Shown here: positions 1 to 64,000 of the stretch, one piece after another | Layout: the number at the start of each line of letters is the position of its first letter | How positions within the stretch are numbered: position 1 is the first letter of the stretch | IMG/VR virus record: IMGVR_UViG_3300021959_006010 | Span: 124,001-188,000 of that record | DNA: 64,000 nucleotides | Reading direction: 5' to 3' (one strand) | Notes under the pieces: model-generated | Told to the model about the DNA's origin: nothing | Seen by the model: the letters and a program-made list of their open reading frames with translations, nothing else | Databases searched by the model: none | Position numbers and translations under genes: made by a program

Positions 1-568
1 CGTTTGCGCCGCCTGTGACTTGGTTAGTAATACTAAACCAATTGAACTGATTTACTCTACTACCTCCAGTACCATCCGAGTTAACAGCATACTCAGGATG
101 CGCAGGATCAAAGTGTCCATCAATAATTACAACATCAACATCTTTGCCTGTTGTTTGAACGTTAATTGTCCCGCTTTGGTTTGAAACAAAAACTCCTCCG
201 TTCGATCCCCAGTTTCCACGTTGTGTGCCTTCGTATACTCTAAGTAATCCCCAGTTGACATCGTTTACATCTTCAATTGAACTTTTATCAAAATTAGAAC
301 TAGTCTGCTCGTAAAAACGTGTGACTACCATTCCTAATTCTTCCGGAGTAAGAGATACGCCGATTACTCGCGGATCGTTTTTAACTTGTTCTGCTTCTTC
401 TTCAGTAAGCATATAATGCGTATTTCTACTTGGAATTCTTCTGTTGGCTACGTCAACTGCACGATCAGGAATATATAAATTTCCTCCCGGAGTTTCCATA
501 TCGTTGTAGAAATCGTCCAGTTCTTCTTTACTTCTTAGTGATACTACATATTCTCTTAATTCAGACAT
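1..568 (-). CDS. S8 (subtilisin-like) serine peptidase, 5' part; runs off the window edge
   Basis: Hand translation from ATG 568 (not in ORF track): MSELREYVVSLRSKEELDDFYNDMETPGG...RNTHYMLTEEEAEQVKNDPRVIGV (propeptide-like), then GKDVDVVIIDG (catalytic Asp motif of S8). Confidence 0.7.
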   Translation of the reverse strand, partial: MSELREYVVSLRSKEELDDFYNDMETPGGNLYIPDRAVDVANRRIPSRNTHYMLTEEEAEQVKNDPRVIGVSLTPEELGMVVTRFYEQTSSNFDKSSIEDVNDVNWGLLRVYEGTQRGNWGSNGGVFVSNQSGTINVQTTGKDVDVVIIDGHFDPAHPEYAVNSDGTGGSRVNQFNWFSITNQVTGGAN

Positions 569-4494: not shown

Positions 4495-4606
4495 AGACTT
4501 TACCCTCTACTTTAACTGCTAATTTTGTTCCACGATTTGTAACAACAGTGACTTTGTTGCCACTGTTGTTTGTTGAAACCGTTTTTTCTTCCGATTTTTT
4601 CGTCAT
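4475..4606 (-). CDS. Small basic hypothetical protein (43 aa)
   Basis: Hand translation MTKKSEEKTVSTNNSGNKVTVVTNRGTKLAVKVEGKVYGKTNN; TAATG stop/start coupling to the upstream gene. Confidence 0.45.
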   Translation of the reverse strand: MTKKSEEKTVSTNNSGNKVTVVTNRGTKLAVKVEGKVYGKTNN

Positions 4607-7600: not shown

Positions 7601-10600
7601 TGGTTAGTGTAATCTGCTGGTCTACCGCCTACAGGTGTTAAACTGTTGTTGTTTAAACGATTTCTATCCTTTTCTTCTGTAAGTGTTGATATAGCAATTT
7701 GGTCATCGCCAATTGTACCACCCATGCTAGTGCCTGTAACACTTGCAGGAAGGTTAGCTGTTTGTGATGCATATGTTCCGCTGACCAATAGTCTTACATA
7801 GTCATATGTTGCATCAAATGCTGTATAAACAGAACCAAATGCTAAATCATTACCTGCTGCATCAGCAGATCCAAAACTAATTGATCTGTATGTATAGTTA
7901 GGATCTTCAGCAAAGTTAACAGCAGTACTTGGACGAATAGTTAAGTTGCCAGGATTTTCTGCACCAGTAAGAATAAAGTTTTGGTTTGAACGTATGTTTA
8001 ACGGCTCGTCTTGTACTATTGCAGCTAAAAGTCCGTCATTACTAAATCCTGAATTACCTGTTGAAAAGTTTGCACGATAAACCTGTCCACTTTTTACAGG
8101 AGTTATTGCTGTTTGATTTATAGTCCCGCTAATAGTTGCCGATGTAATAGCACCAACCGCTCCAAGTTCAGGATCTGTATTAACTCCTGTAATTGTGATT
8201 GTTGCATCGTGTGTTGAAGTACTACCACCTAATTCCGTACCGTCTACTACAATTTGTTCAGTGCCAAGCCATCCTGAACCACCACCTGTTATACTTAGAG
8301 TGTATCCGTTTTGCTGACTCTTTTCGATTACAAATTCTGCATTTATACCACCCGGGCTTGTAGTAGTGTATACTGTATCATCAATTGTATAGCCGTCAAC
8401 TAATACTCCTGTAATTTTTGATATGTTTGCTACTTCGTATCTTCCGATACGATCTGCGCCTTGTATGTTGTGTACTAAATCTAACTCACCTTTGTTAGTT
8501 GGAACAAATTCTGTATCATAGAAATGTAAACTTAATTGTTCAAACTCGTTTGTAAATCCAGTTTGAATAGATAGTGGAATACTGTCAGGACCTTGTCCTG
8601 TTGCTGCAAATTCAAGTTCTTCAGCAAGGTTAAGTGTACCTGAAACGTTGTTTAAGTATACTTTTCTTCCACTTGTTGTAAATGCAATATCAGCACTAAA
8701 GTCTGAAGTAGGCTGCGTTACTGCATCACCAGCAGTTGCGTTTACTATACCTGTAGTTGTAACAATGCCGTCAACACTAAATGCTTTAGCTGCTTGAACC
8801 ATATCATTTTCAAGTGTAACTGCGTCTGGAACTTCGTTTGGATCAGCACCTTCTGCAACTAGACCAAAGTTACCGTTAGCGTTAGAGCCAGCAACTGAAC
8901 GAATCTGCGAACCGTTGTACGAGTAGTATGCAGCATGACAGTAGTATGTAAACATACTAACCATCTCTGACAAGCCACCATTCATTACAAGTAAGCCATA
9001 ACCTAAGTCGTTAATTTGTGTAAAGTCATTTCCTAGCTGTGATCTGTTACCAGCTGTTTGTAATGTAACATCATATGGTACAGGATAATCAACACTGCTA
9101 TAACCAACTGGATTTCCGTTTTGATCGTCTGGTCCAGAAGTAGAATCTAGTATAAGAGTAGCAGTTGGACTTAAAATACCATCTTTCGGATCATAGTCTA
9201 CAATATCGTTAACTTGGTATCTAGAACCGTTTATATAAAACGGAGCCGGAACTTGTGGTTTTCTAATAAACAATCCACTGTTTGGTGCGCCTTCAACTTC
9301 TAGTGTAAACGAATCAATAACATTAGTAATAGTTAAAGGAGTATTACCACAGAATGCATCTACAAGCATACCTCCACGGAATGCCTGACGGTTAATTGTT
9401 TGAGAGAAACTTGAACCAGTTTGAATATATGGAGATTTAGTTAGGATCTGTCCTTCGGGATCAAGCACACACATAAATCCGCCGTGCCCTTGTACAGTCA
9501 TATTACGCAAAATAGTTGCATCATTCATCATAAATGCATCTAATTGTGTGTTATTTCGTGCTGGGTTAAAGTCTGGATCAAAAGCAAACAACATCAAAGC
9601 AAATAGTTCGTTTATTGGACTATTAACACCTGTTTCTTTAACAATATTTGTATTAACATATTGTGTTAAAGAACTTAAACTTGTTATTGCTGTATTATCA
9701 ACAATGTCAAGAACATAAGCATTTAACTGCTGAATAGCAGCACTTGTTTGTGCTTCTTGTCCATTTACAGCACCTGCATAATAAGAACCTTGTGCAGCTA
9801 ACGAATTACTTCTACCGCCTTCTCTAAGATCTGCAACAATTGCATCTACAATAAATCCAACATCTCGAGAACACTTAGCACTGTCATAAGTAAAGCCGTT
9901 CCATATTCCTACATTATTTAGAATATTATCGTCGATCCAAGCAATGATTTCTGCTTGTAAAAATGCTCTGTTTTTCTCTAGCAAGCGAGCAGTATTTTCA
10001 TACTCTCCTGCGTTAGTAACTGTTAACTGACCATTGTTGTCTATGTTAATATCTCTTGTAGGATCGATAAGATAATGTCTACCAAAATAACCTGTTGGAT
10101 CATCAACGCCGGGAGTTAAATTTAGTAGAGGATCATAATACTCTGTGCCTCCTGTTGGCAAGTTTGTATCGGCATAACCAGTAGCACTTGTCGCTCCGTC
10201 GCCTGTCAATCCGTCAAATTCTCTATCTCTATAGAAATAAACGTTAGCCCAAGGACTTAACGATGGACGATTCTTAGGACGAATGATTACACGTCTAAAT
10301 TCGTCACCTTTGATAGAAGTATTTCCAGGTACACGAATTGGATAATCTTCGTAATATATACCAGTTTCGATTCTAATAGTTGTTTGATCTTCTTTTACTA
10401 AGTTTCCAAATTCTAATTCTTCACCGTCTACAAATTCTATAGGTCTTAAAAGATTTAGATAAAGACTATCATTATTAGTCGGTGTAGTTGTTGCAGTATC
10501 AGCTTCGTAGTCATAACGTGTAATTCTACCAATCGCACGTGATGACTTACCAACTACTACTTTACCAACTCTTAAATCACTGTTTGTTGGATTACCTTGG

Positions 10601-12519
10601 TCAACATAACCTGCACCACCGTTTGTAATGTTAACTCTAAATCTTTTCCCGTCAACTTCTTTTGGTCTAGAAAAAACGCCGTTCTCAACAATATCTAATA
10701 CAATATTAAAATTATCTTCAACGCTATCTTCGTCTTGCTGATCCGGTAACACTCCTGCATTTAATGCATCAAACTGTTGTGTGTAAATTGTTTGGTTAAC
10801 TGCTCCAGTTCTTGAATCAAAGTAAGGATCATTTGTATCATTTCTTAAAATATAATCCGTAATTAATTTTGCACGATCAACCGCAGCCAAGTATTCATAT
10901 TTCGATAATCCTTTTTCGTTATTAATTTTTAGATCTGAGTAGTAATAAACACCCGCTTGTATTGAAAGAGTATTAGCACGAATCCCTGCTACATGATCTA
11001 ATATAACACTTTTAATAACATTTGATAAATGGTCTTCTAAAGTTTTTACATCATAGAAATAGCCAGTCCAGTCAACTTGGGTTCCTCTTACGAGTGTTGT
11101 TTCTTGATTTGTAACATTATAGTCGATCCATGCAACAGTTTCTGCAACAATAAAATCGAGGTTATTGTTTACAAGTGTTTGTGCAACTAAATCATCTGCA
11201 ACAGGACTATCAATACCTGCACCTGCAACTACACTGTTAGATTCAACTCCTTGGTCAGTCCAAGTAATTGTTTGCATATAAGGACCTGGCTCAAACTTAC
11301 TTGCAATTTGTATTTCTTCTGCTTTACGTGCAGCAGCACCAACTGTTTTGAATGCATAACTTAGACTTCTTCCTTCGCTACCTGGGGGAGTAAATTCTTG
11401 GGTATCAGAACCTGTTGTACTTACAAATATATTAGTTGTACTTGAACGGCTTGCTTGGTCTACATAGTATTTTGTAACTGCTTGTAAATCTGTCGGACCG
11501 TTCGGAGTTCCTTGTCCTGCAAGATCTCCTGGATGGTCGTATAGGTATAGCGGACCCTCCATATCGTCACCTTGTCTGCGTACAACACTTTCTCTCGGAA
11601 GTGCTTCATTTTGCAGCCAGTTTCCGTAAAGTGCATCATTATAGTCATTATCAACAATAGTTTGTACACCAGATCCGCCTGACGGTCTTAAACGTACTGC
11701 ATCACGAAGTGCTTCTGTATCAGCTGTTGCATCTTGATATGTTGCGTATAGTTCAAGTTCGTCTACATTACGTACTCTTAAATAATAAGTGTTTCCACTT
11801 GTTAGTCCTGTAGCATCAGTACTACCGCTTTCATATGTCCATGCACTGCCGTTTATACTAGCATCTAATCCGTGTGCTGGAATTTCTAGATATCCTGTAG
11901 ATGTTGTATATCCGTTTATAGTAAGAGTATATTCAGAAGCGTCAGCTGGTTCAGGACGCATTCTTGCTCTATTACCCGGTGCTTGTCTTTTAATATAGTT
12001 TTCGTCAGCGTATTTTTTATCAATAACTAAGTCATCTATTGTAATATTAGGCTCATGTATAATATTGTAATCCGTAACAGCTTGCTCATTTACACTAACT
12101 CTACCAATTGCGTTATTATTAGCGTTTAACGGACCTGACAATTCCGGTGTTTGGTCTTCTGAAATTGCAATTTCTCCGATCGAAAGAATAATTTTTCCTT
12201 CTTCGGTCACATCAATATCAATAGTGTCTACAGTTTCTGGTGTTGCACCTGCTGCTTCTGTATTAGATACTATTTTTCTAATCTCAATACCTGTTCCATC
12301 TTGTTTAACAATTGGAATGTATGCAGCTAGATTGTTTCCGACATAAGCATCATAACTATCAGGTGTGTCACCTAAACTAGTAAATGTAATCTGTCCGCCT
12401 AAACCTACAACAGCATAAATCTCACGGAAGTTTTCATTTGTTTTACGAAAACTTTCGCGGACGCTATCACCTGTGCCGTCGTTACCCTCTACACCTATGT
12501 CAATAATTTGTCTTGCCAT
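4606..12519 (-). CDS. Giant baseplate/tail-fibre protein: gp9/gp10-like N-term, pectin-lyase-like beta-helix, C-terminal peptidase-G2-type autocleaving chaperone
   Basis: 2637 aa; N-term MARQIIDIGVEGNDGTGDSVRESFRKTNENF; IRIETGIYYEDYPIRVPGNTSIKGDEFRRVIIRP; C-term QYADLAENY...VALKGRVPCKVIG. Confidence 0.75.
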   Translation of the reverse strand: MARQIIDIGVEGNDGTGDSVRESFRKTNENFREIYAVVGLGGQITFTSLGDTPDSYDAYVGNNLAAYIPIVKQDGTGIEIRKIVSNTEAAGATPETVDTIDIDVTEEGKIILSIGEIAISEDQTPELSGPLNANNNAIGRVSVNEQAVTDYNIIHEPNITIDDLVIDKKYADENYIKRQAPGNRARMRPEPADASEYTLTINGYTTSTGYLEIPAHGLDASINGSAWTYESGSTDATGLTSGNTYYLRVRNVDELELYATYQDATADTEALRDAVRLRPSGGSGVQTIVDNDYNDALYGNWLQNEALPRESVVRRQGDDMEGPLYLYDHPGDLAGQGTPNGPTDLQAVTKYYVDQASRSSTTNIFVSTTGSDTQEFTPPGSEGRSLSYAFKTVGAAARKAEEIQIASKFEPGPYMQTITWTDQGVESNSVVAGAGIDSPVADDLVAQTLVNNNLDFIVAETVAWIDYNVTNQETTLVRGTQVDWTGYFYDVKTLEDHLSNVIKSVILDHVAGIRANTLSIQAGVYYYSDLKINNEKGLSKYEYLAAVDRAKLITDYILRNDTNDPYFDSRTGAVNQTIYTQQFDALNAGVLPDQQDEDSVEDNFNIVLDIVENGVFSRPKEVDGKRFRVNITNGGAGYVDQGNPTNSDLRVGKVVVGKSSRAIGRITRYDYEADTATTTPTNNDSLYLNLLRPIEFVDGEELEFGNLVKEDQTTIRIETGIYYEDYPIRVPGNTSIKGDEFRRVIIRPKNRPSLSPWANVYFYRDREFDGLTGDGATSATGYADTNLPTGGTEYYDPLLNLTPGVDDPTGYFGRHYLIDPTRDINIDNNGQLTVTNAGEYENTARLLEKNRAFLQAEIIAWIDDNILNNVGIWNGFTYDSAKCSRDVGFIVDAIVADLREGGRSNSLAAQGSYYAGAVNGQEAQTSAAIQQLNAYVLDIVDNTAITSLSSLTQYVNTNIVKETGVNSPINELFALMLFAFDPDFNPARNNTQLDAFMMNDATILRNMTVQGHGGFMCVLDPEGQILTKSPYIQTGSSFSQTINRQAFRGGMLVDAFCGNTPLTITNVIDSFTLEVEGAPNSGLFIRKPQVPAPFYINGSRYQVNDIVDYDPKDGILSPTATLILDSTSGPDDQNGNPVGYSSVDYPVPYDVTLQTAGNRSQLGNDFTQINDLGYGLLVMNGGLSEMVSMFTYYCHAAYYSYNGSQIRSVAGSNANGNFGLVAEGADPNEVPDAVTLENDMVQAAKAFSVDGIVTTTGIVNATAGDAVTQPTSDFSADIAFTTSGRKVYLNNVSGTLNLAEELEFAATGQGPDSIPLSIQTGFTNEFEQLSLHFYDTEFVPTNKGELDLVHNIQGADRIGRYEVANISKITGVLVDGYTIDDTVYTTTSPGGINAEFVIEKSQQNGYTLSITGGGSGWLGTEQIVVDGTELGGSTSTHDATITITGVNTDPELGAVGAITSATISGTINQTAITPVKSGQVYRANFSTGNSGFSNDGLLAAIVQDEPLNIRSNQNFILTGAENPGNLTIRPSTAVNFAEDPNYTYRSISFGSADAAGNDLAFGSVYTAFDATYDYVRLLVSGTYASQTANLPASVTGTSMGGTIGDDQIAISTLTEEKDRNRLNNNSLTPVGGRPADYTNQLPMVMTWAGKKHYVYNYREVSDAATGAETYSYNSDAHPYALVDIAEVPNSDLTSAGVTGLNSPVDLTGESVVLRAGLQDGAPATITINISTCRATGHDFLDIGTGSFNETNYPNVILGFPAKNADQDAEVQERNKGRVFYVSTDQDGFFRVGRFFTVDQGTGTVTFSASIALSDVDGIGFKRGVVVTEFSTDSEMSDNAIDTVPVESAVRAYVNRRLGYDHSGIPVSNPIGPRVIVQNGSVPMTGNLDMDGNYITDLANIDLNSDPQVAVNKAYVDSRSDAFNKFSLLRDVSVYNGAENQLLAMSGAKIIIIDALSISGGDFEIGAILRNQAGTVDFGTVVGVYARTDSVLGDVVEIAFTPTVNYTGITVNASVYTNIGVSGTVEDGIYDEIINADEDASSDIGITIVRTDNDNSDDPNVDPDVPTATIDLQINPEVIVNADVSPTAGILQSKLDMQEADTYDPQNDTLPVGGDDDATVQATLGLAKFDGDIFSVARGWTTIADNGISLSKLQTIASDSVLGNSTANTANVAQVSFGTVVDEGGGILHTDISGSNNGAVVRTGSETYDIELITTTGTADSLVKTEANGEVTVNSLALGQNNDYTVLQLDGTGGTRLKITTPVEGVVLTAQGGSSTINPDVYIPGNLNIGGLTDPDGADAGTDPDVFDTSILQDNSTSFSESSWVASNWAYHGFIEAPGEKEAASAGIAIGAGSGKAGTGEVAIVVANSGNSTSPVVATFKSTGIEPDTDSAYDIGTNSLRYNEIFVDTVDTADIVNRNGSFTTTVQFAGATVSNKVIEFKDESGTVALLSDVTSSSNGLTRTLQQVTNAGNTTDNDILPSSTADNVNLGSSSSVFNTVYATTFEGTATQAQYADLAENYLGDADYDAGTVLVLGGDAEVTVTNTKGDHRVAGIVTTNPAHLMNSALEGDHVVGVALKGRVPCKVIGKVQKGDMLVTSAVPGYACVNNTPGVGTVIGKAISTKDDTDKGVVEVLVGRT

Positions 12520-16573: not shown

Positions 16574-19500
16574 ATGGCAACAGAAGCTGTATGGTATGAT
16601 ATTTTCAGAAACTTAACACTCAAAGTAAAATCAGATGGTAGTACAATTGATACTATCGTAGCTGACGAGTACAAGGACACACTTACAATTAACCAAGGAC
16701 TTGGCGTAGCATTTAATCCAAGTGCTGCTGGAGACGAGTTTGACATTGATGTAGATTATCAATTATATGTGCCTGTTGGAACTACAACTGTAAGATTACA
16801 AGATGTAAATTCAAACACAAGAGATGTAAAATTAACACCTGGTTCTGGTGTTTTTATTAGCAGACTTGCAGATGATGAGCTTGCATTTACAAGTTACGGT
16901 GTTGCTGAAAATGATAATCTACACACTGTAACCAAAAGAGGTGCAATTACTACTAATAAACTAATTATAAATGATTTAGAAATTGGTGATATTACAAGTA
17001 CTCCTGGTGTTGACGGATTTTCAGTTCTAGGTGTCGAATTTCAAGGCGACGGTACTTTAGATAACCCGGCTAGACTGTTGCCAGCATATGTAGGTATTAC
17101 TGATCCTACATATACAAAAACATACGAATTTAGCGTAGGTGCAGCAGGTATATTTGGTTACTCTGCTAGCTATCTACCTCCATTAAACTTAACAACAGGT
17201 AGTATTGTTCTTGAAAGAGAAGATCCACTAAATCCAGGAGTTTGGGCTCCTATTGCGCAACAGTCAGGTACAACAGCAGGTGTTACATATCAGCTTTCAA
17301 ATACATATGCAGAAAGTTACACCGGCGGAACTGTTAATTACAGAATTACTGTTAGCTGGACTGGTAACACTAGCCAAGTAAGAGTAGATTTAAATTTAAC
17401 TTACGAAGTTTACGATGTAGCAACTAACGTTTTACTTGAAACTGATACTGCAAACAACAGAGTGTTTTTAAGCGGCAATGTTGGTATAGACGAAGCTAAC
17501 CCTCTTGTTAGTTTAGTAATAAACAGAACAGATGCAATTGCATTACCTAAAGGTATTACAGCCGAACAGCCAACTGGCGCAGACGGATATATTAGATATA
17601 ATACACAAACTAACAAATTTGAAGGATTTTCAAATGGGTTCTGGAACGAATTAGGAAGTGTAAGTGACGTCGACTTAGACACCTACATTACAGCAGAACT
17701 AAATCCCGGAACTGACGATGATACTTTGTATTTTTACAATGCATTTGCAAATAGTTTATCGTTGTCATCAACATTATTAGATGTAAAAAATGATGTTTTA
17801 GTTAGAATTAACAATACAACAGATAGCACTAATTCAACAACAGGTGCTCTTATTGTTGACGGTGGTGCATCTATTAAGAAAAACTTAACGGTTGGATCTA
17901 GTAATACAAATACTGTTACATTTAATAGCAGAGTTGCTAGCTCTTTTGTTCCCGAAGTTACAGCAACACATGCACTTGGCGAAGATGCACTTCGTTGGAG
18001 TGAGCTATTTGTTAGTGATGCAGTAAATGTTAATGATTATACACTTCCACTAGCAGACGGTACTGTAAACCAAATTGTACAAACTGATGCACAAGGACAG
18101 TTATTCTTCGGTGATGCAGACACGTTTGGTGGTAACAGAGTTTATGTAAGTGCTGCAAAAGGTGACGATGCAAACGATGGTATAACTGCTCCAGTCGCAA
18201 CTATTGCACGAGCAGCAAGAATCGCTGCTGATCTAGCATACTCTCCAGAAACAACTGATCCAACAACTGAATCAGAAACTGCTGCACTAAGAGCAGCAGC
18301 ACAGTCTATTGCAGACGATACTATTACATATGTTAATACAACATATCCAACACTAATTTATGACCAAGCAAAGTGTAACAGAGATGTTAAAGAAATTATC
18401 GACAGTGCTATTTACGATTTACGCTTTGGCGGCAACAGCCGTTCAGTAGCAGCAGGTGAGTATTACTATGACGGTACTGGTACATTATATATTACTGGTC
18501 AAGTATCAGAAACTATAGATGCTATTAATTATGCTAAAAGCCTTGCAATAACATACTTAACAGGTACTAGAGCTACTGCAATTGGCGCAAGTTTTGATAC
18601 TGTAACAAGTATTATTACAAGTTTAGGTAACGCACCTGCAAAAACATACGGTGATTTTATTACTAACCAAATTACCATTATGGTTGCATCAGGCGATTAT
18701 GTTGAACAAAACCCGATCTTATTAGGTGATGATATTTCGATTGTAGGTGATAACTTACGTAGAACAGTTATCCGTCCAGCGAACGAAAATTTAGATATGT
18801 TCCGTGTAAGAAACAGTTCTTACATTACAGGCGTAGTTTTCCGTGACGGATTAGTAAACAGAATACCAGATTATACATTCCGCTATGCTATTAGTTTTGA
18901 TAATGTGGTAGACACTGCTACCAGCAGGGCAGGATATGTAAATCTTCCAGTTAGCCGTCCTAGGATTTTTACATCACCATACATTCAAAACTGTTCTGTG
19001 ATTTCGTTCTTAGGCGGTAACGGGGTTGAAATAGACGGTAACTTAATTGATACACCAAACATTCCAAACAGTGATATTGAAGCAGAGAATCCTATTGATT
19101 TAGCAGACGGTGTACCTGAACAAGGTAAGTCAATGGTTGCTAACGCATTTACTATTCTATCGTTTGGTGGTGTTGCGTGGCGTGTAATGAACGAAGCATA
19201 TGCACAGATTGTTAGCTGCTTCGTAATCTTTACTGGCAACGGCTGTATTGCACAAAATGGTGGTTATCTATCTATTACAAACTCGGCGTCAAACTTTGGA
19301 TTGTTTGCTCTTAGAGCAAGTGGTTATAGTCCAAATGCATTTGAGTTTGACCGAGGTATTATCAGCGGCAACGGTATATACGAAGTATATCAAACTCTTA
19401 AATTTGTAGGTTTACAACGTGCTCCATTGGAACACTTTATTGTTAGAGTTAGAAACAATTCTAACATTGATATTACTGATAACTTTAATAACAATAGTAC

Positions 19501-22500
19501 TTTTGGTAATACTGCAAGTGTTGTTCCGACAATTAGCAATGTAAGCGGTAATACTATTACTTTTGCTTCAGCACACGGTTTCCAATCAGGCGAAGAAGTT
19601 GAATATAATTCAAACGGCAATGTAGAAATTGTAGGTCTACTAAACGAAATGACTTACTTTGTAAGTGTTCCAAACACTACTCAAATACAAATTTTTAATG
19701 ATGCCGATTTTACTAAACCAGTAGTAGATTTAGATGCATCGCCTACAAGTGGTACACACGAGTTTAAGTCAGGGTATGAAGAATTTTATGTAACTGAAGT
19801 CGTTAGTTCGCATAATATCTACCAAACACTTACAATACCTGCCGGAACTTACACAATCACACCAGGTGATACTATCCAAGCAACTGATGGCGCTGATACA
19901 ATTAGTGCAACTATTTACAGCTACGACTCAGGTACTAACGAGCTAGTAGTAAGTGTTGAACTTGTACAAAGTGGACAAACAACAGTAAGAAATGAGTTTA
20001 CAACTAACAGTGTTATTGATGCAGGCGAAATAGCAGGCGGTACAGTAAATGTTCTTGGCGTAGCAAACAGAAGAGATTTGTATAGTTCAGAAGTTGCTAT
20101 TATTAGTACAGAAAACAGACCAATGCAAACTATCGGTAGTACTGCGTTTAATCAAATTTACTTACATAGACCTTCGATTGTTAACAGTTCTGCACACACA
20201 TGGGAATATGCAGGTTCAGGTACAGACTATAATGCTCTACCACAGAACGGCGGACAAACAGTTGAGTACTTTGAACAAGTAAGTACACTTCCGGGTCGTG
20301 TTTATACATCAGGTACTAACGAACTTGGCGACTTTAAAGTTGGTGATTTTGTTAGAGCGTTTAACAGAACAGGCAACATTAACTTTAAAAACAAAGTTAG
20401 TATTGGTGAGCTTGACTCACTTGCATTAAGTCTAAGTTCTGGTGTTGTAGTTGACGAAATTTCAACTGATATTGATTTAGGTGACAACGAAATTGGCGGA
20501 CCGCAGCATAGTAGACTTGTTACTCAGCTAGCTGCAAGAAGCTTTATTGACAACAGACTTGGTAACTTTATCGACCAAAACTTGTCAACCAATGCTGTGC
20601 CAAATGCTGTTGTTCAATTAAACGGACAAGGTCAAATTAATGCGGAACTTATTCCTCCGTCAAGTGGTACAAGTGCATTTAGACTAGACGAATATAATGC
20701 ACGTTTAGAACTCCACGAAGATATTCCAAGCAACGATCTAAAATCAGGCGACATTGTAATTGAAGAATATCAAGAGACAGTTATTAACTTAACTGGTAAT
20801 GTTACTGTTGTTGCAGGCGAAACTGTAACACAAGCAAATAGCGCCGCAACTGGTACTGTTAAAACAAGTGTAACAAATGGTTCTACTATTAGAGTAATTG
20901 CTCCATTTAGTGGTACATTTAATCTAACAGACGAACTTACAGGGTCAACTAGTGGAGCATTAGGTGCTAATAGTGTCCCAACTGTTGTAAGCGGACCTAA
21001 CGATGTAACAGACAACTATTTCTTAGCAACTGCAAATGCAAGTCAGTTCTTAGTATTAGATCCAGCTGACACATATGACTTTACTGATATAATTGCAAAC
21101 TCAACACCTGTTACAGGAGCACTAACAGGCGCAACAGGTACTGCTACAGAACACAGAACAGGTGTTGTTACAAGTGTTGATGTAAATAACTTACTTGCAG
21201 GTTCAGGATATTTAACCCCTGGTGCATACAATGACGTAGCTCTTACAAGTGTTACAGGCACAGGTACAGGCGCTCTAGCAGATATTGTTGTAAATGGCGC
21301 AGGTCAGGTTGACAGTATTGATATTACATTTGGCGGTAGTGGTTATGCTGTAGGAGACGAACTAAGTGCAGCCGATAACGACATAGGTGGCCAAGGCGGT
21401 GGCGGCACTGACTTTAGTGTAGATGTATTAAGCATTGAAAATAGATTGTATATTGATCTAGAACCTACTATTGGTATACAGTTTAATGCATCTGATATTA
21501 ATGTAGAATTTACAGTTGACGATAATGCTACTGATTTTACTATTAACCAAACTGCAGAAACAAACTTCGGATTTGATGCTGCTGATGTTGGAGTTGGAGG
21601 CGATGTAACTTACTCAAACAGTAGAATTACACTAACAGCACACGGCATGGCAGACGGTGATCCTGTACGTTATGATTCCGGCGCCAATCCAACAATAGGA
21701 AGTTTAACAAACGGCGATACATATTTTGTTAAAGTTATTGACGCAGACACTATCGAACTTTATACTAATTACGGCTTAAACAGCAAAGTTACATTTATTA
21801 GTTCAAGCACAGGGTCGCATCAATTAAAAATTGATTTTGTTAACTTAACTGACGAATTTTTCTATGCTCCTGCACACGGACTAACAGCAGGACAAGCAAT
21901 TCAATTTAATGCTACAACACCTGTAGTAGGTATTACAGACGGCGATTATCTGTTTGCAGGTAGTATTACTACAAATGCATTTACATTACACAGTGCAAGA
22001 GGTAGCGCATTAGATAGTGTAAACGGTATTACTGTAAATCCAGTAAATTTAACTGCTGACGGTAGTGGTAATGCAACAATTACTATTCAAAATGTTGAGA
22101 TAGTAGGCGAAGTTAACACTAGCGGAAAAGAAGAAAGCAGCTGGAGTAATCTAAGTGCGACAACAATCGATGCTGAAGATATTGTAAGTGGTATTGTTAG
22201 CACATCAAGATTGGCAACAGGTAGTGCAAATAACTTAACAGTCCTACGAGGAGACTCGACTTGGAGTTTTGCTGTACAAGGTATGGTTCCAGAGTTTCCT
22301 GTTACACTAACAGGTCAATCTTATAATGATGGTGTTAAAGATGTTTACTACAACGAAGTAGAAGTAAGTGTAGAACTAGCAAACTATGATAATCCTGTTG
22401 CACCAAGTGCAGGAACAGAAACTGTAGGTGTTGCAGCATTTGATTTTAACCACTTTAACATTGACGCAAATGGACTAGTAACAACTAAAACACCTGCTAA

Positions 22501-24970
22501 CGGCGGCGTGATTGATGCTGACAAACTAGACGGTCAACAAGGAAGTTACTATCTAAATCCAGTCAATTTGTCAAGAGCTGTTCCTATAGAAAACGGTGGT
22601 ACAAATTTAAGCAGTTATACACAAGGCGATCTACTATATGCAGCAACTAACATAGGTACTGGATCATTTACCGAAACCCTAAGTACACTAGCAATAGGTG
22701 CTGCAAATAGTGTACTACAAAGCAACGGAACAGTACCTACTTGGACTGATACACTAACACTTGCAGACTTAACTGTAGGCAACATTCAAGTTGCTGTAAC
22801 AGGTGACAACGAAATTGATACAACTAGTGGTAACTTAACACTTGATTCAGCTGGCGGTACTGTTGAGATTGATGATAACCTTACTGTTGCTGGAAACTTA
22901 ACAGTTAATGGTACAACAACGACTGTTAATAGTACAACTGTAACAATAGATGATCCGATCTTTACACTAGGCGGTGACACAGTACCTACTACTGATGATA
23001 ATAAAGACCGCGGTATTGAGTTTAGATGGTATGATACTCCTACAACAACTGCAAAGGTTGGTTTCTTTGGATTTGATGATAGCACTGGCAAATTTACATT
23101 TATTCCAGATGCAACAAACACAAATGAAGTGTTTAGTGGTACAGCAGGCGATGTAGCATTCAACGACGGTGCATTTACTAGTATTACATCAGGCAGCATA
23201 ACTGTTACCGGTGATACATCACTAGAAGGAAATGTTACACTAGGCAATGCAGCAGCAGATAGAATTACATTTACTGGTCAAATTGCTACAGATCTTGTGT
23301 TCCAAGGTGCAACCGATGACACATTTACAACAACATTAGCAATTACAGATCCAACTACACCAAGTAACACAATTACATTCCCAGATGCAAGTGGTACCGT
23401 TGCAGTAAGTGTAACTGATACCACAACAACTACACAAGGTGATTTAAATTTAGACTTTACCTTAAGTGCTGCCGGTAATGTAAGTGCAACAGGCGATGCA
23501 CACGGACTAGCAACAGGTGATAGTCCAACATTCGCTGGTTTAACAATCAATGGCTCAAGTGTAGTATTTGAAGGTGCAACTGCTAACGACTTCGAAACAA
23601 CTCTAACAGTTACAGATCCAACTGCTGACAGAACTATCACGTTCCCAAATGCAGATGGTACAGTAGTTGTAAGTGCTGGTACTAGTGCTACACAAAGCGG
23701 ATTAGATTTATCCATAAGTGCAGCAGGTCAAATCAGTGGTAGTGCCGAAGGACTTGCTGCAACAGATAGTCCAACATTTGCAGGATTGACTATTAACGGT
23801 AATACTATTGTACTCGAAGGTGCAACAGAAGATGCATTTGAGACTACACTTAACGTAGTTGATCCAACAGCAACGAGAACTATTAACATACCAAACAATA
23901 GCGGTACAATGGCTGTTGCTGTAGACAACACTACAACAACTACACAAGGTGATCTAAACGTTACTATGGGTCTAAGTGCTACCGGTGTAGTAACAGCAAG
24001 CGGTGACGCACATGGACTAGCAACAGGTGATAGTCCAACATTTGCCGGATTAACAATTAATGGTTCGAACATAGTATTCGAAGGTGCTACTGCAAATGCA
24101 TTCGAAACATCGTTTGTAATTACAGATCCTACAGCAGACAGAACTATTACTTTCCCAGATAGTAGTGGTACTGTTGCATTTATTAGCGGTAGTGACATTT
24201 TAACTATTAATGCAAACTCAGGTACTAGTACACTACAATCAGGTGACACACTAACTATCACAGGCGGAACATATTTAACTGCTGGTGTATCCGGCGACAC
24301 AGTAACTATAAATCATGATAACACTACTAGAACAGATACAACAAGTACCGATGCTCCGTCACATGGTGGTACCTTTGAAGCAGTTACAAGTGTTACAACA
24401 AATGCAACAGGTCATGTAACAGCTATTGATGTTTCTACTATTACAATACCAGCAGAAGCAGACACATTGAGTAGTGTTCTTGGTAGAGGAAATACTGCTA
24501 ATACAAACATACTTCCTGACTCAACAGCTAACAATCGAAACATCGGTAGTGCAACTGCTATTTGGAATACTGTATACGCTACAACATTTGATGGTACTGC
24601 AACACAAGCACAATACGCTGACTTAGCAGAAAAATATCTAGCAGATGACATCTATGGTCCAGGTACTGTAATAGCAGTTGGCGGCGATGCAGAAGTAACA
24701 GCAGCGCACGACGAAATTGCACACAGCGTACTAGGTGTTGTAAGTACTGCTCCTGCGTTCTTAATGAACAAGGATTTAGTAGATGGCACTGCAATTGCAC
24801 TTAAAGGTCGTGTACCAGTTAAGTGCATAGGTACTGTACGCAAAGGTGACAGACTAGCACCAAGCCACTTTGCAGGTTATGCTACTGTCGACAACAGTCG
24901 TACAGCGTGGAGTTTTGCTATTGCACTTGAAGATGGAGAAGATGGTTTAGTAGAAGCAATTATTCTTTAA
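16574..24970 (+). CDS. Giant tail-fibre/appendage protein: beta-helix, fibre repeats, C-terminal peptidase-G2-type chaperone
   Basis: 2798 aa; IMVASGDYVEQNPILLGDDISIVGDNLRRTVIRP; PYIQNCSVISF; C-term QYADLAEKY...IALKGRVPVKCIG. Confidence 0.75.
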   Translation: MATEAVWYDIFRNLTLKVKSDGSTIDTIVADEYKDTLTINQGLGVAFNPSAAGDEFDIDVDYQLYVPVGTTTVRLQDVNSNTRDVKLTPGSGVFISRLADDELAFTSYGVAENDNLHTVTKRGAITTNKLIINDLEIGDITSTPGVDGFSVLGVEFQGDGTLDNPARLLPAYVGITDPTYTKTYEFSVGAAGIFGYSASYLPPLNLTTGSIVLEREDPLNPGVWAPIAQQSGTTAGVTYQLSNTYAESYTGGTVNYRITVSWTGNTSQVRVDLNLTYEVYDVATNVLLETDTANNRVFLSGNVGIDEANPLVSLVINRTDAIALPKGITAEQPTGADGYIRYNTQTNKFEGFSNGFWNELGSVSDVDLDTYITAELNPGTDDDTLYFYNAFANSLSLSSTLLDVKNDVLVRINNTTDSTNSTTGALIVDGGASIKKNLTVGSSNTNTVTFNSRVASSFVPEVTATHALGEDALRWSELFVSDAVNVNDYTLPLADGTVNQIVQTDAQGQLFFGDADTFGGNRVYVSAAKGDDANDGITAPVATIARAARIAADLAYSPETTDPTTESETAALRAAAQSIADDTITYVNTTYPTLIYDQAKCNRDVKEIIDSAIYDLRFGGNSRSVAAGEYYYDGTGTLYITGQVSETIDAINYAKSLAITYLTGTRATAIGASFDTVTSIITSLGNAPAKTYGDFITNQITIMVASGDYVEQNPILLGDDISIVGDNLRRTVIRPANENLDMFRVRNSSYITGVVFRDGLVNRIPDYTFRYAISFDNVVDTATSRAGYVNLPVSRPRIFTSPYIQNCSVISFLGGNGVEIDGNLIDTPNIPNSDIEAENPIDLADGVPEQGKSMVANAFTILSFGGVAWRVMNEAYAQIVSCFVIFTGNGCIAQNGGYLSITNSASNFGLFALRASGYSPNAFEFDRGIISGNGIYEVYQTLKFVGLQRAPLEHFIVRVRNNSNIDITDNFNNNSTFGNTASVVPTISNVSGNTITFASAHGFQSGEEVEYNSNGNVEIVGLLNEMTYFVSVPNTTQIQIFNDADFTKPVVDLDASPTSGTHEFKSGYEEFYVTEVVSSHNIYQTLTIPAGTYTITPGDTIQATDGADTISATIYSYDSGTNELVVSVELVQSGQTTVRNEFTTNSVIDAGEIAGGTVNVLGVANRRDLYSSEVAIISTENRPMQTIGSTAFNQIYLHRPSIVNSSAHTWEYAGSGTDYNALPQNGGQTVEYFEQVSTLPGRVYTSGTNELGDFKVGDFVRAFNRTGNINFKNKVSIGELDSLALSLSSGVVVDEISTDIDLGDNEIGGPQHSRLVTQLAARSFIDNRLGNFIDQNLSTNAVPNAVVQLNGQGQINAELIPPSSGTSAFRLDEYNARLELHEDIPSNDLKSGDIVIEEYQETVINLTGNVTVVAGETVTQANSAATGTVKTSVTNGSTIRVIAPFSGTFNLTDELTGSTSGALGANSVPTVVSGPNDVTDNYFLATANASQFLVLDPADTYDFTDIIANSTPVTGALTGATGTATEHRTGVVTSVDVNNLLAGSGYLTPGAYNDVALTSVTGTGTGALADIVVNGAGQVDSIDITFGGSGYAVGDELSAADNDIGGQGGGGTDFSVDVLSIENRLYIDLEPTIGIQFNASDINVEFTVDDNATDFTINQTAETNFGFDAADVGVGGDVTYSNSRITLTAHGMADGDPVRYDSGANPTIGSLTNGDTYFVKVIDADTIELYTNYGLNSKVTFISSSTGSHQLKIDFVNLTDEFFYAPAHGLTAGQAIQFNATTPVVGITDGDYLFAGSITTNAFTLHSARGSALDSVNGITVNPVNLTADGSGNATITIQNVEIVGEVNTSGKEESSWSNLSATTIDAEDIVSGIVSTSRLATGSANNLTVLRGDSTWSFAVQGMVPEFPVTLTGQSYNDGVKDVYYNEVEVSVELANYDNPVAPSAGTETVGVAAFDFNHFNIDANGLVTTKTPANGGVIDADKLDGQQGSYYLNPVNLSRAVPIENGGTNLSSYTQGDLLYAATNIGTGSFTETLSTLAIGAANSVLQSNGTVPTWTDTLTLADLTVGNIQVAVTGDNEIDTTSGNLTLDSAGGTVEIDDNLTVAGNLTVNGTTTTVNSTTVTIDDPIFTLGGDTVPTTDDNKDRGIEFRWYDTPTTTAKVGFFGFDDSTGKFTFIPDATNTNEVFSGTAGDVAFNDGAFTSITSGSITVTGDTSLEGNVTLGNAAADRITFTGQIATDLVFQGATDDTFTTTLAITDPTTPSNTITFPDASGTVAVSVTDTTTTTQGDLNLDFTLSAAGNVSATGDAHGLATGDSPTFAGLTINGSSVVFEGATANDFETTLTVTDPTADRTITFPNADGTVVVSAGTSATQSGLDLSISAAGQISGSAEGLAATDSPTFAGLTINGNTIVLEGATEDAFETTLNVVDPTATRTINIPNNSGTMAVAVDNTTTTTQGDLNVTMGLSATGVVTASGDAHGLATGDSPTFAGLTINGSNIVFEGATANAFETSFVITDPTADRTITFPDSSGTVAFISGSDILTINANSGTSTLQSGDTLTITGGTYLTAGVSGDTVTINHDNTTRTDTTSTDAPSHGGTFEAVTSVTTNATGHVTAIDVSTITIPAEADTLSSVLGRGNTANTNILPDSTANNRNIGSATAIWNTVYATTFDGTATQAQYADLAEKYLADDIYGPGTVIAVGGDAEVTAAHDEIAHSVLGVVSTAPAFLMNKDLVDGTAIALKGRVPVKCIGTVRKGDRLAPSHFAGYATVDNSRTAWSFAIALEDGEDGLVEAIIL
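23295..24175 (+). repeat. About 3.5 tandem copies of an ~85 aa unit in the fibre
   Basis: FEGAT..FETTL..TDPTADRTITFP..SGTV...GLAT.DSPTFAGLTING recurs in A-B-A-B order; DNA ggactagcaacaggtgatagtccaacatt repeated. Confidence 0.85.
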
Positions 24971-54479: not shown

Positions 54480-55172
54480 TTATGTAATCTTAGGAAACAA
54501 CATGTCACGACAGAATACTTCTACATCTTCTTCAGGTAAACCTAAACTTTTCATAACTGCCGGGGTGTGCGGATTTTGTTGCTGATTATGACAATAATAA
54601 TCTTGGCATGCTGCTACGATATCAGGACTTCCTTCTCCCTTTGATTCTCCAACTTCGTCAAAGTATGCATGTAAGTTGTCTAGTGCAATTCTTATAATTT
54701 CTGTTGCTTCGTCTTCTGTCTTAACATTGCCAGCTGCTAACATTTTACCTGTAAATATATTTCTCGCCCATTCTGGTAGTTCACGCTGTTTCTCTGGAAT
54801 AAAGTGTTCAACACTATCGTAGTAACCTTGTATCATAGGATGATCAACCTCTGAACTAGGCGAAAAATCATGGAATGCTCCTGTTATTTTATTCTTACCA
54901 GCAATAACATCAAAGCCATAAATTGGAGCAGAATTATCTAAGGTAGGAAAAATACATACGTGCATCATCCAGAGGCCTTTTGTATCTCGAGCGTCAACAA
55001 CATCAATATGTGCCCGACGAATGCTATCGTTAGCCCAGACACGATTAATCCAACCATTGTCTGGCTGATTAAAAGCATCAAGTCCTTCTTCGTTGATTTC
55101 CGTTGCACGTTCATCAAACGTTTTAATAATTTCATCTTTACAATCGATTAGTTTATCCCAGATAAAACTCAT
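54480..55172 (-). CDS. pcyX: Ferredoxin-dependent bilin reductase, PcyX-type
   Basis: RRAHIDVVDAR..KGLWMMHVCIFP, GFDVIAGKNKITGAFHDFSP, RELPEWARNIF, NPHTPAVMKSLG. Confidence 0.85.
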   Translation of the reverse strand: MSFIWDKLIDCKDEIIKTFDERATEINEEGLDAFNQPDNGWINRVWANDSIRRAHIDVVDARDTKGLWMMHVCIFPTLDNSAPIYGFDVIAGKNKITGAFHDFSPSSEVDHPMIQGYYDSVEHFIPEKQRELPEWARNIFTGKMLAAGNVKTEDEATEIIRIALDNLHAYFDEVGESKGEGSPDIVAACQDYYCHNQQQNPHTPAVMKSLGLPEEDVEVFCRDMLFPKIT

Positions 55173-55705
55173 TCTTCTCCTAACTCCTCAAATAGTTGCA
55201 TAGCAAATTCAAAACAACGATTGGCTTCGTCTGCCATCTCATCGTGTAGCATTGCACGTACTGTTGTTTTTAAATTTTCTACGTCTTCAAACTCATACAT
55301 TTTACCTGAGCCTGGATTACGTTTAGCAATCATTTGACCGCCATACATATCACCAAAGTGACGTACATAAATGTGTGCAAGCAATTCGTCACTATTCAAA
55401 GTTACTACATGACTTGCATATTGATCCACTACAGGACACAATAAATCTGTGTTTCTTTGAATATCATATTCTGATTCTAATTCTTCGAGATCTTTTAATA
55501 TGTTGTCTACTCTACAAATATTTTCAATACCTTCTAGAACACTACGTTGTTTTGCAATCGATTCTAAAACTGCATATTGTACATATTGATTGTAAATGTA
55601 TCTGTGATATTCTTGCGGAGTCATGCCTTTTAACAATTTACGGGCATGTTCGGTACGTTCTGCTTTTTGATGGTTAGCCCATGTAAGCTCTTTAAGTTTG
55701 CTCAT
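55169..55705 (-). CDS. hemO: Heme oxygenase
   Basis: LKELTWANHQKAE (proximal His), LAHIYVRHFGDMYGGQMI. Confidence 0.88.
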   Translation of the reverse strand: MSKLKELTWANHQKAERTEHARKLLKGMTPQEYHRYIYNQYVQYAVLESIAKQRSVLEGIENICRVDNILKDLEELESEYDIQRNTDLLCPVVDQYASHVVTLNSDELLAHIYVRHFGDMYGGQMIAKRNPGSGKMYEFEDVENLKTTVRAMLHDEMADEANRCFEFAMQLFEELGEE

Positions 55706-56007
55706 TCTGCCTCTACTGTAACTTGTAATGGAAAGCCGTTTGTTCTACTTAAATTAACTGTTTCGATTGCTTTTTGCTCTGCAATTTCAAAAAGATAAGT
55801 TCCAACAACTCCACTTCCTTCGTTGTGGATTGTCATTGTAATACTCTCTGCAGATTCGCGACTGTGTTTAAAGATTTCTGTTAGAACTTTGTAAACCCAT
55901 TCCATTGGTGTTTGGTCGTCGTTTAAGAAAATAACATTGTATTTTAAAGGTTCAGTTATTTGTTCTTCAATTTTTTCATCTAGTTTAATTTCAATATCTG
56001 TACTCAT
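55702..56007 (-). CDS. clpS: ClpAP adaptor ClpS
   Basis: YNVIFLNDDQTPMEWV...IHNEGSGVVG...FPLQVTVE; start MSTDI with GGAG RBS. Confidence 0.9.
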   Translation of the reverse strand: MSTDIEIKLDEKIEEQITEPLKYNVIFLNDDQTPMEWVYKVLTEIFKHSRESAESITMTIHNEGSGVVGTYLFEIAEQKAIETVNLSRTNGFPLQVTVEAE

Positions 56008-56028
56008 ATTATCTCCTAGTAAGTAAAT

Positions 56029-56048
56029 GGGGGAGTCTGAGCTCCCCC
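56029..56048 (-). terminator. GC-rich hairpin between hsp20 and clpS
   Basis: GGGGGAG-6 nt-CTCCCCC; weak U tail. Confidence 0.55.
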
Positions 56049-56055
56049 TAGACAA

Positions 56056-56541
56056 TTACTTGCCTACTTCTCCTTCGAACTCTCCTTCGATTGCTTCTTG
56101 TACATGACCGTTCCAGTCTGTAATAGCAATCTTTTTAGGCTGTAGTTCTTCAGGTATTTCACGCTTTAGATATATGTTAAGCATACCTAGTTCAAGGCCT
56201 GCGCTTTCTACTTCAACGTGATCAGCAAGTGTAAACTCTCTACGGAAGTTGCGTCCGCCGATTCCTTTGTGTAGGTAGTTTACTTCTTCGCCTCCCTTAG
56301 GAGCGTTACCTTCAATTGTTAGAATATTTTTATCCTTAGTAATTTCTAAGTTATCCATACCAAAGCCAGCAACTGCAAGTGAGATCATATACTCATCTTC
56401 GTTGATTTGCACAATATTGTATGGAGGATATCCTGTTGTCTTACTATTAGCAAATTCTCTTTCAAGTTGATTGAAAATTCTATCAAATCCAATAGTAGCT
56501 CTGTGGAATTGAGGTAGGTCTAGAGTTGTTAGTCTTGTCAT
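56056..56541 (-). CDS. hsp20: Small heat-shock protein (IbpA-like)
   Basis: IGFDRIF, YPPYNI, LAVAGF, YLHKGIGGRNFRREF, GMLNI. Confidence 0.95.
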   Translation of the reverse strand: MTRLTTLDLPQFHRATIGFDRIFNQLEREFANSKTTGYPPYNIVQINEDEYMISLAVAGFGMDNLEITKDKNILTIEGNAPKGGEEVNYLHKGIGGRNFRREFTLADHVEVESAGLELGMLNIYLKREIPEELQPKKIAITDWNGHVQEAIEGEFEGEVGK

Positions 56542-56548
56542 GTTTTTT

Positions 56549-56592
56549 CTCCTTTAATAAGCAAGTTAACATTGTAACCCTTTCGGCGTTAC
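56549..56592 (-). promoter_or_regulatory. ROSE-like RNA thermometer plus upstream GAAA hairpin in hsp20 5' UTR
   Basis: CUUGCUU-AUUA-AAGGAG pairs with a bulged G over the SD; upstream GUAAC-G-CC-GAAA-GG-GUUAC. Confidence 0.7.
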
Positions 56593-56610
56593 GACTTTAT
56601 TTATCAACTA

Positions 56611-57774
56611 TCAATTACCGATAGTTGACGATTCGTACACAGAATTGTGTGTCTGTGTACATCGAACAAATGTGGTACATTTGCTCAAATGCTTTAATCT
56701 GACTGCGCCAGCATAAGTGCAAGTAGAGCGCACCCCACCAAGTATATCTTGAATGCTACCTTCCACTGCTCCTCGGTAAGGAACAAGAACCGTTCTTCCT
56801 TCACTACTGCGATACTCCTTTAGTCCGCCAAAATGTTTTTCGTTCGCGGCCTTCGAACTCATTCCGTAGAATTGTACAAACTTTTTTTCTTTATAAATGC
56901 ATTCAACATCGTTTGGTTCTTCATTTGAAATCAAAACATACTCGTCTGTTTTATACAATTTGGTAATTACTTCGCCGCCACCTTCATCGTGTCCGGCTAA
57001 CATACCACCAAGCATTACAAAATCTGCACCAGCTGCGAAAGCCTTGGCAACATCTCCGGGGCAAGTACAGCCGCCGTCAGCAATAATATGTCCGCCAAGC
57101 CCATGAGCAGCATCAGCACACTCAATGACAGCGGAAAGTTGTGGGTATCCGACTCCAGTTTGAATCCTAGTAGTACAAACGCTACCAGGTCCAATACCAA
57201 CTTTAATAATATCAGCTCCAGCAAGAATAAGTTCCTCCGTCATTTCGCCTGTTACTACATTTCCGGCGATGATTACAATATGTGGATAGCGTTGTCTAAA
57301 CTCACGCACAAATGTTGCAAAGCGTTCTGAGTAGCCATTCGCAACATCAATACACACATATTTTAGATTACCGTCTGCTTGTTCGTATACATTGCGAAAC
57401 TTCATTTCGTCTCGATCAGTAATACCGATACTCATAGCAACATAGTTAGTGCGACTATAGTCATCAGTATCAAAGAAACTTACAAGTTCTTGTACACTAT
57501 AAGTTTTAACTAAACAAGTAAAGATACTTTGTTTAGCCAGTGTGTCGGCCATTTCAAACGTTCCAACACCGTCCATGTTAGAAGCCATAATAGGAACGCC
57601 TCGCCAGTGACGTGTGTCAGGACGTAACTGTTCCATACTCATATCTTCCGGAGTCCAGTTACGCCAAGTATAGCCTCTTTGTAAATCTACTTCTTTTCGA
57701 GATCCTAGAGTTGATCGTTTAGGACGAATTAGTACATCCTTATAATCAAGTTTCATGTCTTCTTCGAGACGCAT
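56611..57774 (-). CDS. guaC: GMP reductase
   Basis: [46 protein letters not shown]. Confidence 0.92.
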
Positions 57775-63945: not shown

Positions 63946-63978
63946 TGAGTATCTCCTATTGGTTACATAATAGTTATT

Positions 63979-64000
63979 AAAAAAGGACCCTTTCGGATCC
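63979..64000 (-). terminator. Intrinsic terminator at window edge
   Basis: GGATCC-GAAA-GGGTCC-T6. Confidence 0.75.

Follow-up and report, generated by a model that had tools for sequence, protein, structure and literature searches.

[quoted passage not shown] This thermosensing hairpin is preceded by one or more stable 5' hairpins, for a total of two to four. The short ROSE-like elements of Pseudomonas ibpA (Rfam ROSE_3, RF02523) have only two hairpins, of which hairpin II alone confers thermoregulation whereas hairpin I is G+C-rich and does not melt, and a variant that combines deletion of the unpaired G with a second change to pair the SD perfectly locks the structure (PMC3669281). The classical ROSE elements of Alphaproteobacteria (RF00435; Bradyrhizobium hspA type) have three to four hairpins, are about 90–100 nt long and G+C-rich, and end with a long 3' hairpin. 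The cyanobacterial hsp17 thermometer, a minimal zipper-type element on an sHSP gene, consists of a single short hairpin (mentioned in PMC3669281), with no UUGCU motif and no bulged-G hairpin I. RNA thermometers are described almost only in bacteria, the classic phage exception being the bacteriophage lambda cIII switch (Rfam Lambda_thermo), an mRNA of unrelated sequence that alternates between two structures, is translated more at physiological than at high temperature, and encodes a lysis-lysogeny regulator rather than a chaperone. A 2024 review only speculates that viral RNAs might respond to temperature in this way (PMC10884466).

A leader with the sequence and structure signature of ROSE was identified on the minus strand of a 64,000-nt stretch (hereafter, the window; positions 124,001 to 188,000 of IMG/VR record IMGVR_UViG_3300021959_006010). 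The record, 275 kb long and estimated to be 77% complete, represents a large marine T4-like phage that encodes T4-type topoisomerase II subunits, DNA ligase, and baseplate and tail-fibre proteins, and it shares sequence words with estuary and marine metagenomes. The element (Table 1) is entirely intergenic, located between an upstream gene of the IMPDH/GMP-reductase family and an HSP20 gene. The initial annotation had listed an ATAAATA motif, a first hairpin, CUUGCUU facing AAGGAG across a short loop, and a pairing with a bulged G, and each of these features was found on re-examination of the sequence, so that the observation is correct to the base.

Table 1. Features of the sHSP leader and its surroundings (window coordinates)
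Feature	Position	Strand	Sequence or content	Remarks
Stop codon of the upstream IMPDH/GMP-reductase family gene	56613-56611
T4-type late-promoter-like motif	56598..56605	-	GATAAATA (NATAAATA); ATAAATA at 56604-56598	Promoter function inferred; followed by five bases
Predicted transcription start	about 56592	-	First base of hairpin I	If T4 spacing holds
Hairpin I	56574..56592	-	GUAAC / bulged G / CC / GAAA loop / GG / GUUAC	Bulged G at 56587; stable, not expected to respond to temperature
A/U-rich linker	56566..56573	-	AAUGUUAA	AUGUU (56572-56568) can pair with AACAU (56544-56540)
Anti-SD	56559..56565	-	CUUGCUU	Contains the ROSE motif UUGCU; G56562 has no partner
Loop of hairpin II	56555..56558	-	AUUA
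Shine-Dalgarno, 3' strand of hairpin II	56549..56554	-	AAGGAG	7 nt before the AUG
Spacer		-	AAAAAAC	7 nt
Start codon	56541-56539	-	AUG
sHSP gene	56056..56541	-	161 aa, HSP20/alpha-crystallin	Pfam PF00011, E 3e-14
Terminator-like G+C-rich hairpin	56029..56048	-		Just after the sHSP stop codon; consensus scan only; weak U-tract
Second match of covariance model R1	63966-64001			Intrinsic terminator, not a second element

The proposed pairing of hairpin II (C-G, U-A, U-G, bulged G, C-G, U-A, U-A) is sterically possible and is the minimum-free-energy fold of the isolated hairpin at 5–10 C, whereas at 37 C ViennaRNA prefers a register with a 1x1 G.G internal loop; in neither register does G56562 have a Watson-Crick partner. 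An outer helix formed by the linker would enclose hairpin II and the first two bases of the start codon, but this helix, which is shared with the related leader L019, is not conserved as such in other leaders and hence is optional. The hairpin that follows the sHSP stop codon suggests a monocistronic unit, although its function was not tested. Two further readings were rejected, namely, a CsrA-type site, because the GGA is in the stem and not in a loop, and an overlapping ORF on the opposite strand, because none of at least 40 aa is present.

For this single sequence, the evidence against chance is modest: the fold z-score is -2.1, and 4 of 200 shuffles fold as well. The strict pattern CTTGCTT-N2-8-AAGGAG was found once, at the sHSP leader, in each of four 180–290 kb relatives, whereas the reversed control pattern occurred once in total among them. 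A blastn search of isolate phages with the locus yielded nothing, and relatives were found through the protein instead. The protein-based search of IMG/VR returned 80 loci whose sHSP is 61–85% identical to that of the window, and all 80, giving 53–54 distinct leaders, carry CTTGCTT, a short variable loop and the SD, although the flanking non-coding bases vary. The loop of hairpin II varies in sequence and in length (mostly 3–6 nt, 1–6 overall) while both stem strands stay fixed. In all 54 distinct leaders, RNAfold predicts a hairpin I with a single bulged G on the 5' side, two to four pairs below the loop, and some relatives have a third hairpin between the promoter-like motif and hairpin I.

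A plain MAFFT alignment analysed with RNAalifold recovered only 4 pairs, of hairpin II, because hairpin I was misaligned; accordingly, a covariance model (R1) was built from a subset of 12 cleanly alignable leaders and used for realignment. R1 found the expected site in all 54 sources (30–83 bits). In the resulting alignment, 99.2% of the cells form standard pairs, compared with 53–64% when the partners are slid by 1–3 columns, all 7 pairs of hairpin I have compensatory changes, with 109 cells changed on both sides, none of 500 shuffles reached the observed covariation score, and RNAalifold returned the same 13 pairs. This alignment was fitted to the model, which favours the structure, but the raw sequences show the same compensation directly. 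In the 275-kb record of the window itself, R1 matches strongly only at this leader. The possibilities that the complementarity near a strong SD is fortuitous, or that hairpin I is simply the terminator of the upstream GMP-reductase-like gene, which might be suggested by the modest z-score and by a similar GGAUCC-GAAA-GGGUCC hairpin elsewhere in the window that is a true terminator, are excluded by these comparative data: hairpin I has no U-tract and lies downstream of the promoter-like motif, and the whole module is conserved, covaries and moves with the chaperone genes whatever gene lies upstream.

Within the clade of the window, both strands of hairpin II are invariant and so give no covariation, for or against; conservation of the SD is expected, and it is the invariance of the seven upstream bases that needs explaining. 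More distant phages supply the test. In the S-TIM5 group, a U-A pair becomes A-U (CACGCUU with AAGGUG), in the locus L311 of another distant phage the outer C-G becomes A-U (AUCGCUU with AAGGAU), and U and C alternate opposite the same G, which is the U(U/C)GCU variation. Because MAFFT left-justified the isolated hairpin II segments, the pairs were counted by script: six core pairs are kept in 18 of 18 diverse phage leaders, except for the loop-closing pair, kept in 16 of 18, and the G is invariant and unpaired in 18 of 18. Thus, the pairing is selected, not just the sequence. This observation bears on the possibility that CUUGCUU and the A-rich spacer form an operator for a trans-acting factor, such as a phage RegA-like translational repressor, another RNA-binding protein or a small RNA, that would control SD access in place of temperature. 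The strict invariance of seven unpaired-looking bases could reflect sequence-specific recognition, and in phage S-T4 a regA gene lies next to hsp20, but this adjacency was seen in one genome only, no complementary RNA or factor was identified, and the motif is the known ROSE anti-SD, so that this alternative appears improbable.

The phage leader shares with the Pseudomonas ibpA elements the location in the 5' UTR of an sHSP gene, the length of about 55–60 nt, the two-hairpin architecture, the stable hairpin I with a bulged G in a GAUGCC..GGGUC-type stem, also present in the ROSE_3 consensus, and the U(U/C)GCU motif imperfectly paired to the SD. The differences are that the phage element is viral and A/U-rich, is probably transcribed from a phage late promoter rather than by sigma-32, is also found on groES and dnaK, and has a hairpin II of 6 pairs that lacks the flanking G-C clamps reported for Pseudomonas and hence is much less stable. 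A search with the Rfam ROSE covariance models, which had been put forward with the initial annotation as one way to check it, gave only sub-threshold scores. ROSE_3 is the best family at exactly this site, with 21.3 bits (E 0.18 in a 2-kb search) against a gathering score of 43; it is again the best hit at the homologous site in 9 of 15 relatives tested, with 22–32.5 bits (E 0.008–0.03 for five of them in a 65-kb search), and reaches 34.1 bits (E 3.5e-4) in Methylophilales phage Melnitz. None of the ROSE families (RF00435, RF01832, RF02523) appears at the gathering threshold in 20 related loci, and no RF00435 hit was obtained on the phage leaders. Rfam freshwater-2 hits (22–27 bits) rest mostly on the shared A-rich SD region and were not pursued.

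The nearest cellular homologues of the phage sHSP are alphaproteobacterial, at 39–49% identity (Azospirillum, Bradyrhizobium, Roseibium, Methylobacterium and others). Of 20 such loci scanned, five (three Bradyrhizobium, Roseibium and Methylobacterium) carry the classical ROSE family RF00435 above threshold at the same position, ending at the start codon. Their leaders show the same GAUGCC..GGGUC bulged-G hairpin and a U(U/C)GCU-SD hairpin, and several Acetobacteraceae have a two-hairpin short form. In the reciprocal test, the phage model R1 detects two alphaproteobacterial sHSP leaders, L152 and L156 (24.5 bits, E 0.002). The phage element is concluded to be a diverged relative of ROSE that most likely travelled with the sHSP gene and whose A/U-rich composition keeps it below the curated thresholds.

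Searches with R1 and with sequence patterns found further copies in related phage contigs, each with an NATAAATA motif, a bulged-G hairpin I and CUUGCUU-loop-AAGGAG, in front of groES (loci L164, L172 and L173) and dnaK (L169/L175, L191, L226 and L243). In the four large relatives examined, the element is otherwise unique to the sHSP gene, and in the genome of the window the GroES-like gene has no such leader and no dnaK is present. A very specific sub-pattern (GCCGAAAGG, gap, CTTGCTT, gap, AAAGGAG-type SD) hit more than 120 IMG/VR stretches; of the 80 that were read, nearly all precede ORFs of about 120–160 aa with sHSP-like N-termini of many different types, and three precede dnaK. Among cultured phages, the leader precedes hsp20 in Synechococcus phage Syn9 (R1 score of 29.7 bits) and S-T4, the OM43 phage Melnitz (46.9 bits) and the Sinorhizobium jumbo phage Phosso (35.4 bits), and is found with a variant anti-SD in the S-TIM5 group; Pelagibacter (SAR11) phage HTVC115P has a CUCGCUU-AAGGAG hairpin but a different hairpin I. 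The leader that precedes hsp20 in HTVC115P and in Phosso is of a related, CUCGCUU type. UCGCU variants occur in Syn9, S-T4, HTVC115P and Phosso. The cyanophage hsp20 leaders (Syn9, S-T4) follow the proteobacterial ROSE design rather than that of the hsp17 thermometer found in the hosts of some of these phages. A blastn search with the Syn9 hsp20 leader finds it in 318 cultured cyanophage records, and hsp20 is a core gene of T4-like cyanophages (PMC3037559).

The motif upstream of hairpin I resembles the T4 late promoter TATAAATA, which occupies positions -13 to -6 and which GATAAATA matches in 7 of 8 positions. An [A/C/T]TAAATA motif (mostly GATAAATA or TATAAATA) lies upstream in 89 of 114 distinct leaders (78%), at two preferred distances to CUUGCUU, about 32–36 nt in the two-hairpin form, as here, and about 59–70 nt in forms with an extra hairpin. 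Six leaders instead have a TTGAC-N-TAnnnT promoter-like pattern. The gp55/gp33 genes, the transcript 5' end and the temporal class of Syn9 hsp20 (Syn9 transcriptome, PMC5029184) were not examined. Late-promoter use is plausible but inferred, and the observations do not settle it in either direction. In the window, 12 of 18 NATAAATA sites lie within 120 nt upstream of an ORF start, including those of structural genes such as a tail-fibre gene, the sHSP leader being the longest of these at 56 nt. Metatranscriptome contigs from salt-marsh samples cover the sHSP coding region of relatives at 10–100 times the depth of the neighbouring genes and run on into leader variants that contain hairpin I, but mix many phages and define no 5' end.

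By analogy with the tested ROSE-like elements, hairpin II should occlude the SD in the cold and melt on warming. The isolated hairpin has a predicted stability of -4.1 kcal/mol at 5 C, -2.2 at 20 C and about 0 at 37–43 C, and across 27 distinct members of the clade the zero-stability temperature is 43–59 C. Deletion of the unpaired G, which had been named as a test in the initial annotation, was performed in silico and lowers predicted SD accessibility from about 0.3 to 0.04. However, the partition function predicts only partial occlusion of the SD that changes little with temperature (unpaired probability of 0.29 to 0.42 from 5 to 42 C), and with a wider context the sHSP SD ranks 25th of 37 genes in the window for occlusion. 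The hairpin is far weaker than the bacterial ROSE 3' hairpins (about -0.6 compared with -12 to -16 kcal/mol at 37 C) and could be open at all host temperatures unless non-canonical pairs stabilize it; nearest-neighbour models give no credit for such pairs, which stabilize ROSE hairpins, and so neither prove nor disprove the switch. These results make a constitutive translational attenuator and 5' mRNA stabilizer, which would set a fixed, low or late level of chaperone synthesis without a physiologically relevant temperature switch, the main alternative, and the location of hairpin I at the predicted 5' end is the classic position for a stabilizer (discussed in PMC3669281). This alternative is nevertheless considered unlikely because a plain attenuator does not need an invariant UUGCU with an unpaired G and a U.G pair, as any complement of the SD would do, yet 80 of 80 leaders keep exactly the thermometer-type imperfect pairing, and the element is restricted to heat-shock chaperone genes (sHSP, groES, dnaK).

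The best explanation, with a probability of roughly 0.7, is that the leader is a viral, minimal member of the ROSE-like class of RNA thermometers. In this model, the sHSP mRNA is probably made from a T4-type late promoter and begins at or near hairpin I, which most likely helps hairpin II fold and protects the 5' end from decay; a few bases downstream, CUUGCUU would fold back on the SD to form a short, imperfect, A/U-rich hairpin that hides the ribosome-binding site at low temperature and melts like a zipper as temperature rises, so that 30S subunits bind and the phage chaperone is translated. The same module is placed in front of hsp20 in many aquatic phages and in some of them also precedes groES and dnaK, which would form a phage-encoded, RNA-controlled heat-shock regulon. 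The anatomy of the element, its conservation and covariation, its specificity for chaperone genes, and its similarity to ROSE_3 and to the ROSE-controlled alphaproteobacterial sHSP genes come directly from the sequence comparisons, whereas promoter use, the transcription start, SD occlusion in vivo and the temperature response, for which no data exist, are inferences. The interpretation in the initial annotation, a ROSE-like thermometer gating translation of a phage chaperone under a phage late promoter, is supported in its checkable parts, and understated the finding in three respects: hairpin I is itself a ROSE signature, the element also precedes groES and dnaK in related phages, and it is present in cultured cyanophages.

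In the literature searched, which does not cover subscription journals so that a prior description is not excluded, no paper combines cyanophage, hsp20 and thermometer, papers on viral sHSPs and on cyanomyovirus genomics (PMC3037559) do not mention such a leader, and nothing relevant links ROSE-like elements with phages. What is already known is the ROSE class itself; what appears to be new is a viral, minimal version that precedes several chaperone genes. The finding gives a concrete mechanism, directly testable in cultured systems (Syn9 with Synechococcus, Melnitz with OM43), that would link temperature to phage gene expression in the ocean, and a function-related clue for the long-enigmatic cyanophage core gene hsp20. 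It also points to a cis-regulatory RNA that was most likely transferred together with its gene and then spread to other chaperone genes, and would offer a family of very short, low-temperature thermosensors for synthetic biology. In a broader reading, which is about as likely as not, large aquatic T4-like phages, including the globally abundant cyanomyoviruses, may carry their own RNA-based temperature sensor, a captured and miniaturized proteobacterial ROSE module deployed as a cassette in front of up to three chaperone classes (sHSP, GroES/EL, DnaK). Phage proteostasis and virion assembly would then be tuned to ambient temperature independently of the host heat-shock regulon, with hairpin stabilities adapted to cool marine hosts.

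In the window, the sHSP gene lies within a cluster of auxiliary genes that encode a ferredoxin-dependent bilin reductase, a heme oxygenase, a ClpS adaptor, the sHSP itself and an IMPDH/GMP-reductase family enzyme, an arrangement that resembles the PcyX/heme-oxygenase phages discussed in PMC11480375. The G+C-rich hairpin that directly follows the sHSP stop codon is located inside the annotated TTG-start extension of the ClpS ORF, and the true ClpS start is probably the downstream ATG. On the other side of the sHSP gene, an 8-bp inverted repeat, CAACUAUC / GAUAGUUG, spans the stop codon of the upstream gene and ends on the G of GATAAATA; this repeat is also present in the related locus L067 and underlies a weak hit (22 bits) to the Rfam freshwater-2 family. 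A weak hit to the model of the ROSE-like element at the end of the window does not represent a second copy but rather an intrinsic terminator, GGAUCC-GAAA-GGGUCC followed by U6. The window also contains two giant ORFs of 2637 and 2798 aa that were not analysed here. Salt-marsh metatranscriptome contigs of relatives (runs X19-X22) cover the sHSP coding region far more deeply than the neighbouring genes and continue upstream into variants of the bulged-G hairpin (hairpin I).

Coordinates of the additional features in the window, in related phage contigs and in cultured phages.
Sequence	Position	Strand	Feature
Window	54480-57774	-	Auxiliary gene cluster
Window	56605-56627	-	Inverted repeat
Window	56029-56048	-	G+C-rich hairpin
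Window	55700-57200		Region compared with metatranscriptome contigs
Window	63966-64000 and beyond	-	Intrinsic terminator
Window	4606-12519	-	Giant ORF, 2637 aa
Window	16574-24970	+	Giant ORF, 2798 aa
L164 (related phage)	1410-1526		Element in front of groES
L172, L173 (related phages)			Element in front of groES
L169 (related phage)	1410-1530		Element in front of dnaK
L175, L191, L226, L243 (related phages)			Element in front of dnaK
L300 (Syn9)	339-394		ROSE-like hsp20 leader
L305 (S-T4)			ROSE-like hsp20 leader
L303 (Melnitz)	299-355		ROSE-like hsp20 leader
L304 (Phosso)	331-385		ROSE-like hsp20 leader
L302 (HTVC115P)	343-403		ROSE-like hsp20 leader
L301 (S-TIM5)			ROSE-like hsp20 leader
L068 (related phage contig)	3585-3887		Permuted tmRNA

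The phage-type leader, together with an sHSP at 64–78% identity, was also detected in contigs assigned to Pirellulales, Marinimicrobia, Coraliomargarita and Rhodobacteraceae MAGs (loci L083-L086, including a 335-kb contig binned as Neomarinimicrobiota), which are probably mis-binned phage DNA. Among cultured phages, ROSE-like hsp20 leaders are carried by phages of cyanobacteria, OM43, SAR11 and Sinorhizobium, and a blastn search finds the Syn9 leader in 318 cyanophage records. One related phage contig encodes a permuted (two-piece) tmRNA that matches the alphaproteobacterial model (71.7 and 79.8 bits), which hints at an alphaproteobacterial host for at least that relative. Bacterial ROSE is essentially confined to sHSP operons; related phages, however, encode GroES/GroEL and DnaK, and place the same promoter-like motif, bulged-G hairpin and CUUGCUU-SD hairpin in front of groES and dnaK.
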